Shown one piece after another: positions 17,786 to 48,851 of a stretch of 64,000 nt of DNA; the first letter of the stretch is position 1; each line of letters begins with the position of its first letter. The position numbers and the translations under genes are program-made. This DNA comes from Convolutriloba macropyga (taxonomy: Eukaryota). The stretch spans positions 47,430,001 through 47,494,000 of the forward strand of contig NC_134469.1 in assembly GCF_964194025.1 (NCBI RefSeq). The letters run 5' to 3'. Below the pieces are notes generated by a model. That model saw only the letters and a list, made by a program, of their open reading frames with translations. It did no database searches and was not told the origin of the DNA.

Positions 17786-20214
17786 ACGTAGCAGGTAGAA
17801 TGCCGGAAAATAGCCGCGATAGACGCTTGTGGTCTTCCATGAATTGAAACAACTGAAGAAATAAGATACAGATCGACCACCAGTCCTTTAACAGACCACT
17901 AGACTTTTTGGGTTAGATTCGGACTGTCAATTTTAAGACGCAAAGTGTCTATAATGAAAAAGCCCTAAAAGAGCTTTTTTCAAAATTGATATTTGACATC
18001 AAAAACTCAAGAATTAGAGCATATTAGTTTGGCACTACTTAGAAGCACAATATTGATTTAACTAGTAAAATTTCATAAAAAGTGAAGTTCCATAAGGGCG
18101 TTCACAAGTCATTTTTTAGTGAGGTAAGTCACGTATTGATCTAAAAACCGAAATGGCGTCACGTACCTAAATTTTAGCTGCAGAGCAGTAGAAGTCAATG
18201 AAGTCATTGAAAAAGTCAATTCCAAGAAGCCAGGTCGTAAGAATCATCCATGGAGACGATGAATTAAAAAAACATAGCAGGACAAGTCCTGACGTACAGT
18301 TCAAAAAATTTTCACTGACTAAACAAAAAACTGGACCTTGAACGGACTATGAGTGAACTGGGAAGATCATTTCGATAAAAAAAAGATGAAATGAAAATTT
18401 AAAAAAAAAAACAGAAAAACAATGTCAAATTGCCACATGTGAACCAAAAAATAACTAGCGAGAATTAGAAAGGTTGTTCGAACAAATGCCAATGTTGTTC
18501 TAGGCATAGAATGAACTAAGTATGGATTGGAAAAACAATCCGATCCAAAAAATTGAAAAAAAAGTTAAAATCTAAGTGAAAATGCCGCATGTGAACAACA
18601 AAACCACTAGCGAGAAAACTAATTTTTGTTAAACACCGTTTTCTCAGTCTACTTTAAAATTTAGAGAAAAATTTTACGCCGCAAAACCATTCGCGTTTTC
18701 GCTCCACTTCCTGTTTCGGCGTGACCAATATCGATTATCCAATTCGACTTCAAAAATCATAAAAATCTGAACAGATCTTTAAAAAAATATAGCCGAAGTC
18801 CTGAAGTGCAATTCAAAGCATTTTCACTGACTAAACGGAGAACTAGACCTATATCGGACTATTACTAGATTGGAAAAACCATTTAGAAAAAATCCCATCC
18901 AAAAAATCGAAAAAAACGGTAACAATCAAAGTGAAATTGCCGCATGTGAACAAAAAACCACTAGCGAGAAAGCGAATTTTTGTTCAAATACCGTTTTCTC
19001 ATTCTACTTAAAAATTAGAGCAAAAAAATTCACGCCGCAAAACCACTCGCTTTACTTCCTGTTTCGGCGTGACCAAATTCACTACTCCAATTTGACGTCA
19101 AAAATCATAAAAATGTGTGAACAGATCTTCAAAAAAACAGCCGGAAGAATTCCGGAAACGACTCGAAGTGGAAATCCATTTAAACGCCAACCAACTACTC
19201 ATCAAACAAAACCTGGCTCCACTAATTTTTGAATATCTTGAATTTAAACCATAAAACAAAAAAGTAAAAAAACAACAAAATCAAATCTGTTAAAATATGA
19301 TTTAAAAAAATCTGATCAAATTTTGTTATAACTTGAGATCCGGAAAAAACTATCTCTGCCAAATTACTTCATCAAAACAACTAGTACTTACTAAAACCAC
19401 TTATGTAAATTTTTAAATATACTTGAGGCCAAATAAAGAAAAAAAGCTCTTAAAAACAACTTGCACTAAAAACTGGAAAATGTTAATAAATTTTTTAAAA
19501 TTACAAAAGCCCCAGATGCTCGCAAAACAATAGGCAAGTCACGAAAAACTACAAACAATTAAAAATAGTTCCAATTTTCGCCATATTTTGCAATATTTCT
19601 CAACAAAAAATGACTCATATTCACAAAACTGTAACCAAATGTTATCGAAAGTTTGCTCAAGTAGAAGGGGTCTTTCAATACCCATTTGAGCTAGTAAAAC
19701 AAAACAATCGTCAAAAAACGCAAAATTAGCTCGAAAATCAGCAAAATACATGAAAAACCTCCGAATTAGCATAAAATTCATACGAAATTCCAGAAAACTT
19801 CAAACCACTACCAAAACCAGCCTAAAATTAAAACAAAATCATAACCAAATCTCAATCATAAAAAATGAAAAAAAATGCTTTACAATGCCGCACGTGAACA
19901 AAAAATTTCGCTCGCTTACAGAATTTTCTTCACACCTCAATTTCTCGCTCTCTAGAAAACAGCGATATGAACAAAAAACCACTCTCTTTTCGCTCCACTC
20001 TTCATTTTGTTCAGCAACAAAATCTCTTCACAAAGTTTTTCACAAGTTTCATTTCCCGCTTCAAAATTCACTCCAATAAAATTGATCAAAAAAGGACGTC
20101 TCCAATACTCCTCTTCGAGTCGTAAAAAGACAGCGCCCCAATACAATTCAAATTGTTTGAATTTTAAAAAACCACAATGTCCCCAATAATAGCCGCTATC
20201 GCTTCGCGGCTATT
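17786..20214 (-). mobile_element. Nested Helentron-like non-autonomous elements: A[17786-20214] containing C[18272-20165] containing B[19137-20123]
   Basis: Plus-strand spelling: A subTIR AATAGCCGCGA/TCGCGGCTATT; C end ACATAGCAGGAC-AA-GTCCTG and ACAATTCAAA-TTG-TTTGAATT; B end CCGGAA-GAA-TTCCGG with ACGACTCGAAG/CTTCGAGTCGT. Strand assigned by Helentron convention (subTIR plus stem-loop end = 3'). Confidence 0.75.
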
Positions 20215-20494
20215 AATATACAACGAAGTAAAATCACTCAATAATAGAGTTTGATAAAATTGAGACGCAAGTGAACTTTGGGAATGCATATGAACTTCAA
20301 AGTGTCAATTTGAATTTGACCTTTGAAACGTTTGCTAGCTTTTCAATGTTGAGCTACGGAATAGAAAAGCATATTTCCTTCACGTTGAATCAGTCTCAAC
20401 CTCGCTTACTCTCATCTCGTCCTTTTATCAATCGCACATGTTACACGCCTCCATTCGGGCTGGTAGCTGCCAAGAATATCAAAAACGGGGTAGG

Positions 20495-47700: not shown

Positions 47701-48851
47701 CTGAAAAAATCAATAAAACCGGTAGAAATGTAGGTGCCAGGACAGAGCTAGAAAGATACGAGCTAGAATGTGAACAATATGGATACAAGGTAAAGAACAC
47801 CGTAACAAGCACTAATTCTTGATTTTTGAAAGTTCAAATCAAAGTTTAAAAGTTTTGAAAATTCCAAAATCAAATTTAAAAAAATAAGAAAAACTAACAC
47901 CATTTCATTTTTCAGCATTCGAGACATAGAAAATACAAGGATACATCCGAGACAAAAATCTATCCTGCAGAACGGATCAAATAAAAAGAAAAAGCAGAAA
48001 ACAAACATACGAAACATTGAAACATTTTGCAAAAAAAGGTCAAAAAATTTTTAGGACAGCATTTATAAAAAAAAATTTAACTGTTTTTCAAAAATTTAAC
48101 GCTAAAAAATTATTGACGTTTTTATCGAAACGAAATTAAAGCCCCTCATGTTGCACAAAAAGAATATTGCTAGTAATTAAAACCAAAATCCAGACAAAAA
48201 ACAGAAAAATAGGAAAAAAAACTACCAAAATCGGATTAGCATATGTACAACTTCATAAAACAAAATTACATCGAGGTAAAAAGAGGCATCGAGTATATAA
48301 ATTGTCAACGGGAAGTTGTCATATTGACTGATTTTTGACAAAAAGACGGCTAAAAGATCCAAAAATGAAGAAAATAATAGGAAAAAAGCCAAAAATTAAT
48401 TAAAAAATCAAGAAATTTATGCCAATTTTGAAACGCGTTTTCAGGCTCTGCAAAACACTGTGCTATTGATTTCCAAGGTTTACATTTCAATATAGCATCG
48501 AATAAAAATCATTTCTACAAAAAACCAAATTACAAGCAAAAAAATAGGCCACTTAGACGAAAAAACGGCTAAAAACGGTTATCTATATAAGCCATTCAGT
48601 CAAAAACTACTTTTCAAAGTCAAAAAGTCATTCACGAAACGCAGCGCATGATCAAAAAACTTCTCTCGCTCAGAAAAAATTAGTTCACACAGCAATTTCT
48701 CTCACTTTCGCTTTTAGGTCAAAACAGCGTCTGAACGAATAGTACTTCCGGTAAAAAAAAAAAACCTTAAGAAAACCAATACTCCTCTTCGAGTCGTAAA
48801 AAAAACCAAGAGAAGGCCAATAATAGCCTCAGCTATCGCTGTGCGGCTATT
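44765..48851 (-). mobile_element. Family A element containing two tandem B bodies (45201-46967 and 46968-48797)
   Basis: A ends at 44765 and 48851; ACATAGCCGGAAGAATTCC at 45201 and 46968; single CTTCGAGTCGT at 48797; bodies similar to 26436-28573. Confidence 0.85.

Follow-up and report, generated by a model that had tools for sequence, protein, structure and literature searches.

Recurrent nesting of HINE-like elements in the first T-run behind resident 5' modules in Convolutriloba macropyga

In the accessible parts of the published accounts, HINEs are described as carrying a repeat at the 5' terminus, a sequence complementary to it towards the 3' end and a short palindrome, and as inserting into T-rich DNA without a target site duplication (TSD) (PMC4067079; PMC11417382), with variable numbers of T flanking the insertions (Thomas et al. 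2014, PMC4067079). For the FoHeli1-type Helitron2 elements of Fusarium, stacks of two to five 5' termini have been described and ascribed to self-insertion (Chellapan et al. 2016, PMC5148889; PMC13342296). Here we report on nested HINE-like elements of Convolutriloba macropyga, found in a stretch of 64,000 nucleotides (NCBI RefSeq assembly GCF_964194025.1, contig NC_134469.1, positions 47,430,001 to 47,494,000), which as a whole is called the window in the following. An earlier note, made from the sequence of the window, had described elements sitting in an A-run beside the terminus of their host element, with empty and filled sites side by side. All junction positions it had given were found again within a few bases; for one copy of family B, at 51925, this holds for the left junction only.

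The elements resemble HINE/DINE-1-like Helentrons (PMC4067079; oyster Cg_HINE, PMC7492417) in their complementary 5' and 3' repeats, the 3' palindrome and the hairpin-forming inverted repeat at the 5' end, and likewise in being non-coding, in inserting into T-runs without TSD and in containing internal micro- or minisatellites. They differ in their target: the accessible parts of these papers report a general T-rich target and no preferred position within other elements, whereas here 83-90% of the copies of two families, B and C, occupy a single defined T-run of other HINEs (among the matches listed in the genome-wide search described below). The FoHeli elements are similar in that the repeated 5' piece is short (first 31, 65, 73 or 85 nt), that stacks occur at different loci and that they have been proposed to arise from nesting shortly behind the 5' end (PMC5148889; PMC13342296). 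Short 5' segments stacked at several loci are found here as well; in this case the stacks are heterologous and the nests that were resolved are mostly complete. The Fusarium accounts, in the parts accessible to us, concern a single family with tens of cases, mostly hybrids with several 5' ends and one 3' end, and give neither a site rule nor statistics (PMC5148889; PMC13342296). In C. macropyga, in contrast, complete nests with cognate 3' ends in nested order involve at least eight families and thousands of copies, the first T-run is used exactly, and a sister family provides a non-targeting control. The accessible literature on Helitron2 and HINE targets contains the stacked 5' termini of Fusarium, but we found this site rule described there no more than end-directed target selection for eukaryotic rolling-circle transposons. 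As far as these sources go, stacked 5' termini are thus known, while the exact site rule, the number of families, the complete nests, the thousands of copies and the non-targeting sister family are new.

Anatomy and class of the elements

Judged by their sequence, families A, B, C and D/E are non-autonomous, non-coding rolling-circle transposons of the Helitron2/Helentron type (HINE-like) that lie on the minus strand. Because of this strand, the terminus of the earlier note is the true 5' end and its A-run is a T-run, so that the supposed A-run beside a terminus has to be replaced by a T-run behind the 5' end of a Helitron2-type element. The host called A in the note comprises four related families (A1 to A4) instead of one; the site usage ascribed to it was correct.

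All families share one plan. Read on the plus strand, a left end (A)ACATAG is followed by a hairpin with a 6-bp stem and by a word of 10-12 nt, X, and the right end is the reverse complement of the element's own X in every family, X itself being family-specific (Table 1). On the minus strand, the 5' terminal repeat comes first, in most cases folded into a terminal hairpin module of 33-49 nt, and a T-run is next; on the 3' side, the complement of the 5' repeat is followed by the 6-bp-stem hairpin and by CTATG(T). The 5' terminal and 3' subterminal repeats covary in at least six families, giving the asymmetric inverted repeats of HINEs, and the palindrome is represented in A, B and C by the 6-bp-stem hairpin with CTATG(T). 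Paralogous empty and filled sites differ only in T-run length, in agreement with insertion into T-rich DNA without TSD, and element ends in ordinary DNA are likewise flanked by T-runs. Folding was better than in shuffled sequence for the 5' modules of A1 and C and for all three 3' hairpins, with -8.0 kcal/mol and a z of -5.4 for the 5' module of C and z values of -2.1 to -2.8 for the 3' hairpins. B-type interiors contain a long degenerate G-rich tract (GGGT/GGTAG-like) and a (CT)n microsatellite (L022(-) 7470-7720; window 43113-43149). Ends were located by family-specific patterns, since a generic finder of hairpins plus complements produced many false pairs.

No open reading frame of at least 120 aa lies wholly within an element of the window; one frame of 120 aa crosses a C/B junction (18870-19232). 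Searches for tRNAs (ARAGORN) and Rfam matches gave none between 17 and 53 kb, and in a self-comparison of the window all repeats within 17.8-52 kb were direct. Two other classes were rejected. A canonical Helitron (HLE1) would begin with 5'-TC, end in a 3' hairpin with CTRR and insert between A and T. Neither the TC nor the CTRR end is present; the elements have a 3' end CTATG(T), family-specific 5' repeats and T-run flanks instead. Short or long interspersed nuclear elements landing in a poly(A) tail, for which terminal poly(A), TSDs and 5' truncation would be expected, do not apply either, since the A-run lies within the host at 33-49 nt from the host end, since there is no TSD and since complementary repeats define both ends of the insert.

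Position and recurrence of B and C insertions

We searched the 1.18-Gb assembly with fixed anchor patterns, listed the 18-22 bases adjoining each match and classed the contexts of the first 100 matches listed per anchor. Reversed patterns used as controls gave 0-151 matches, compared to 1,374-12,556 for the real ones, so that the observations are not due to chance. The anchor for the B 5' end had 8,844 exact matches (control 25). Among the matches listed, 90 of 100 B 5' ends adjoined an A-run with a host tail behind it, the host being C (41), A1 (12), A2 (11), A3 (6), A4 (4), E (6), B itself (9) or D (1); one of the remaining ends was in tandem and 9 had an unrecognised context. For C (12,556 exact matches of the 5' end anchor), 68 of the 82 true 5' ends among the matches listed were in the site of A1, A2, A3, A4, an A-like element or C, the others being tandem or duplicated (8/82) or of other context (6/82), with one in an interior A-run of A1; head-to-tail C pairs accounted for 6/82. 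Altogether, 83-90% of the B and C copies listed were on-site, in at least eight host families for B and at least five for C. The A1/A4 5' end (5,722 exact matches) behaved differently: among the matches listed, only ∼4/100 were in such sites and ∼90/100 in ordinary unrelated DNA. B and C are specialist nesters, whereas the A relatives reside mostly in ordinary T-rich DNA. Plain abundance of HINE T-runs was rejected as a cause, since B and C nest and A relatives with a like T-run target do not. The left anchor of the C site had 11,351 exact matches, and about two thirds of the C sites among the matches listed were empty, about one quarter were filled by B and a few by C or other ends.

The precision of the site was determined in a detailed sample consisting of the window and 20 fetched 10-kb stretches (264 kb). 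All 24 anchored B 5' ends in this sample were located at 33-49 nt from a host 5' end, and stacks with a spacing of 33-51 nt were present at 20123-20214, 28573-28668 and 43284-43454 of the window and at 20/20 sampled loci. Wherever the B 3' end was located, its flank was the left-of-site sequence of the same host that provided the right flank; with the cognate host on both sides, these are proper nests and not merely 5' pieces that were carried along. Interruptions of C, A1, A2 and A3 copies, called by chaining BLAST hits of uninterrupted reference copies, were at the one site in 27/27 cases (coordinates ∼361 in C, ∼442 in A1, ∼469 in A2 and ∼479 in A3), although each host contains 5-9 other A-runs of 5-9 nt. 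In the whole genome, the C-site anchor was followed by a B 3' end in 1,374 cases, compared to 0 and 0 for two interior C anchors; in the 264-kb sample, all three anchors occur at similar frequency (15, 20 and 11). Position-specific nesting, as claimed by the earlier note, therefore held when compared with A-run density.

The site corresponds in all hosts to the first T-run of at least 4 bases past the 5' module. The sole exception is a T4 within the B2 module, where B2 dimers join. Inserts have the orientation of their host, with at most one inverted case; the pattern for inverted insertions was weak, since its word also occurs in the left end of B and three of its four hits were truncated direct copies. 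The T-run of an empty site is ∼A8 on the plus strand, while filled sites have A8-9 on the left and A5-8 on the right, and this nearly full-length run on both flanks fits the variable T flanks of HINEs rather than a duplication. Host tails are mutually unrelated and no motif apart from the T-run is common to the hosts. With tails so unrelated in sequence, no pairing of a guide sequence with the target was seen. Taken together, B and C integrate repeatedly, in host orientation and without TSD, in the first T-run behind a resident 5' module.

The earlier note had also favoured some recurrence of these insertions. The 24 B copies of the sample represent at least 14 combinations of B subtype and host family. 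In a tree of 19 C copies, two clades were separated with a support of 100/100; both occur in A1, A3 and A4 hosts and one of them in A2 hosts, and the host label changes 11 times, compared to 10.5 times when shuffled. Six A3[C] composites form two groups by their A3 part and two by their C part, and the two groupings cross. The C sites of these composites contain B1, a B1 copy 85% identical to it, a divergent B1', B2a or, in two composites, no insert, and all six composites differ in state. The incongruent groupings of hosts and inserts and the many combinations of subtype and host show that nesting is recurrent and site-specific and not chiefly the result of a few ancestral events that were amplified. 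Composites probably also spread as units.

Proposed mechanism and alternative explanations

Putative recruitment of the incoming element by a transposase that is bound at the resident 5' end is plausible; it fits the anatomy of the elements, in which the T-run used is the first one behind the 5' hairpin module. Position next to a resident 5' module would then define the target, independently of the module's sequence. According to this model, the RepHel transposase would bind the resident 5' module and nick or unwind the adjoining T-run, and the strand of the incoming copy would be joined at the opened run. A new element brings its own 5' module and T-run, so that the next one can enter and 5' ends are stacked ∼40-50 nt apart. 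The same activity at the T-run in front of a 5' end would lead to head-to-tail arrays, and nicking at the inner run to dimers repeating the stretch from the site to the 3' end. Because the 5' and 3' repeats are family-specific complements, an outer element may be copied past inner 3' terminators, which suggests that a composite could be mobilised from its outer ends. The explanation as a whole, i.e., HINE-like identity, nesting of B and C at the first T-run and a RepHel mechanism with co-mobility, appears likely to us. That B and C are near-obligate parasites of transposons, whose integration would be directed by a complex on the 5' end of another element, possibly into a single-stranded intermediate, is a more tentative proposal that may well not hold.

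Bacterial insertion sequences (IS) with end-directed insertion and the single-strand HUH transposons of the IS200/IS605 type, which insert beside a fixed short motif, are alike in outline: their site is set by an element end or by a motif adjoining a hairpin, and their orientation is strand-specific. They differ in enzyme family and in the kingdom of their hosts.

Several points count against this explanation as a whole. The link between the 5' module and nicking is one that we infer, and neither a transposase nor an intermediate nor a new insertion was observed. Of the 90 genomic matches to the Rep domain PF14214, some are in open frames of ∼2,500 aa; none of the six PF14214 loci inspected carries the termini described here, and no autonomous partner with these termini was identified. 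The B 5' module, itself a used host site, forms no strong hairpin. Off-site nesting occurs, if rarely: in the window, a D-type insert (∼41430-41865) is located in an interior A-run of the C copy at 41388, and further cases are found at G000:C1:7551039 and G000:C1:8802499. Besides the D-type element within C, the off-site types are a C end that continues into interior sequence of A1 and an A1 end that continues into interior sequence of C. Furthermore, the 264-kb sample is small and was selected by B ends, most of it within the first 3.5 Mb of a single contig. The trees rest on 19 C copies and 6 A3[C] composites, and with elements that are old (copies diverged by 5-25%), gene conversion could blur them.

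Four alternatives were weighed against the proposed explanation. The first attributes the site to DNA structure instead of a protein: a T-run beside a 5' palindrome would be preferentially single-stranded, as a cruciform or a hairpin at a replication fork, and favoured by any rolling-circle integration. HUH enzymes act on single strands, the A1 and C 5' modules fold well, and beyond the T-run the hosts have no sequence motif in common, all of which would be in line with such an effect. But the B module folds poorly and yet serves as a host site (9/100 among the matches listed), A-type elements of the same superfamily do not prefer these sites, and no comparable targeting from inside is seen at 3' hairpins with a T-run behind them. 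We regard a purely structural cause as unlikely.

The second alternative is survivorship. Insertion would be random among T-runs, and only nests close to the 5' end would leave the composite mobile and hence be amplified and seen. Most copies of any abundant family are indeed products of amplification, and the ∼7-9% of B and C ends beyond recognised host sites (among the matches listed) could be primary events. Non-autonomous elements, however, need only their ends, so that interior nests should move equally well, in conflict with the counts at the C-site and interior anchors and with the on-site position of all 27 interruptions. Insertion events are also frequent relative to copies; with such a ratio, pure survivorship predicts many off-site single-copy nests, and primary off-site nests should exceed the on-site ones several-fold. 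Finally, A-type relatives with a like taste for T-runs are in ordinary DNA in 90% of the cases (among the matches listed). This makes survivorship improbable.

The third, already raised in the earlier note, assumes a few ancestral nestings that were amplified as composites and later exchanged their interiors. Some composite types do recur: A3[C[B1]] is present at three loci, and A3[C] is found at different loci with related parts. Against this stand the number of host families (at least eight for B and five for C among the matches listed) with their unrelated tails, the lack of clustering of C subfamilies by host, the different states of all six A3[C] composites and the similarity of ∼88% between C copies from A1 and from A3, two hosts whose bodies fail to align. 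We disfavour this scenario as quite improbable; a few amplified nestings are not the main story. Template switching at T-runs during rolling-circle replication, i.e., copy choice between co-replicating elements without integration, is very improbable: the T-run is roughly doubled at filled sites (from ∼A8 to A8-9 plus A5-8) and the repeated part of dimers extends from the site to the 3' end, but two precise switches would be required per event, the exclusive use of the first T-run and the rarity of such inserts in other runs of A-type elements would stay unexplained, and variable flanking T numbers are, in the accessible text, already known for ordinary HINE insertions (PMC4067079).

Nests of the window, side observations and significance

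The nests and single elements of the window are collected in Table 1, together with the complementary end pairs of the families.

Table 1. Elements and nests of the window (positions within the window) and complementary end pairs
Feature	Position	Strand	Remarks
A4-type host, outermost of nest 1	17786..20214	-	5' end 20214, 3' end 17786; hairpin + X + complementary right terminus
C in A4 site	18272..20166	-	dimer: second left end ∼18787, one right (5') module; left flank GACGATGAATT-A7
B1-type in C site	19135..20123	-	left flank GATCTTC-A7; right flank A5 + C tail
A1 host with C (22182-22583)	21724..22634	-	C site 22531-22556 empty
A3 host with C (23595-23994)	23112..24046	-	C site 23941-23966 empty
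Three-level nest	25463..28668	-	A1 (25463-28668) > C-long (25914-28616) > B2a (26436-28573)
Solo A2 element	35759..36280	-	A-type site 36213-36238 empty
Four-level nest	40961..43454	-	D > A1 (40961-43377) > C (41388-43328) > divergent B (∼42120-43284)
A1 host with B2b dimer directly in A1 site	44765..48851	-	dimer 45201-48797, internal second 3' end 46968
B-type 3' end after D-type left-of-site motif	51925..51965	-	left junction only
A1 complementary end pair			ATAGCCGC/GCGGCTAT
A2 complementary end pair			ATAGCTGCGAA/TTCGCAGCTAT
B complementary end pair			ACGACTCGAAG/CTTCGAGTCGT
C complementary end pair			TACAATTCAAAG/CTTTGAATTGTA
D/E complementary end pair			GAATTGCTCT/AGAGCAATT

The two C sites that the earlier note had given as empty at 22538 and 23948 are indeed uninterrupted and read GATCTT/ATATCTT, then A8-9, then the C tail. 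The other C sites it had listed are filled by B copies with differing interiors, as claimed (19135-20123, 26436-28573 and ∼42120-43284); the copies at 19135 and 26436 have in common only their leftmost ∼30 nt and their rightmost ∼22 nt. The A site of the A2-type element at 35759-36280 is empty, and A sites are filled by C at 18272, 22182, 23595, 25914 and 41388 and directly by B at 45201, where B is a dimer. In nest 1, the A4 tail CCACAATGTCCCC...GCGGCTATT directly follows the C end at 20166. Three termini stacked within ∼110 bp had been noted at two places, and the distance is in fact 91-95 bp (20123/20166/20214 and 28573/28616/28668). In the four-level nest, the A1 terminus is duplicated out to 43403, and the D tail (43404-43454) comprises the 51 nt beyond the A1 end. 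For the interruption of D near the same end, the note was right on A1 at 40961 and on the left junction of B at 51925; a 5' end belonging to this B copy was not found within 5 kb.

Dimers consist of one 5' module and two units of body plus 3' end (window 45201-48797 and 18272-20166; L012(-) 4476-7978; L022(-) ∼6600-7978). The two units are joined at the T-run of the site or, in B2, at the T4 inside the module (CCTTAAGA directly ahead of ACATAG). Such dimers have the appearance of nicking products at the site or of read-through products of rolling-circle copying.

In addition, the extreme 5' terminus of A1, A3 and C elements shows tandem duplications of 17-29 nt (window 43378-43403; L008(-) 8072-8100; L011(-) ∼8020-8040). 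The outer elements between 17786 and 48851 (A4, A1, A3, A1, A2, the D-hosted A1 and A1) share one orientation over 30 kb, and throughout this region the plus strand is A-rich, with an AT skew of +0.1 to +0.3. The common orientation and the A-richness may reflect a strand-asymmetric region (an intron or the direction of replication) that steers T-run-dependent insertion. At L021:7870-7940 (+), a stretch like the 3' half of a tRNA (GGGATTCGAAC..., plus strand) adjoins a B-type 5' module; it lies within an E-type element of 259 bp that contains two stacked B modules and no B body. The window also contains young tandem duplications unrelated to the nests, at 2337-8871 (3.27 kb x2, 97%), 36412-38412 (1.0 kb x2, 98.7%) and 53683-64000 (∼5.3 kb x2, 98-99%).

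To our knowledge, the target choice of Helitron-type transposons is poorly understood beyond 'AT' or 'TT'. The genome of C. macropyga supplies thousands of natural events that obey a sharp rule (use of the first T-run that follows a resident 5' module, on the same strand), and with a built-in control family that does not follow the rule, a simple donor/target assay could address the question. Stacked 5' termini, by which Helitron annotation tools are confused, are explained by the rule. It also shows how composite elements and arrays can be built step by step, and the complementary end pairs suggest that outer elements can move past inner terminators. If recruitment by the resident end is true, target choice would be set by the end of a resident transposon rather than by the sequence of the host DNA.

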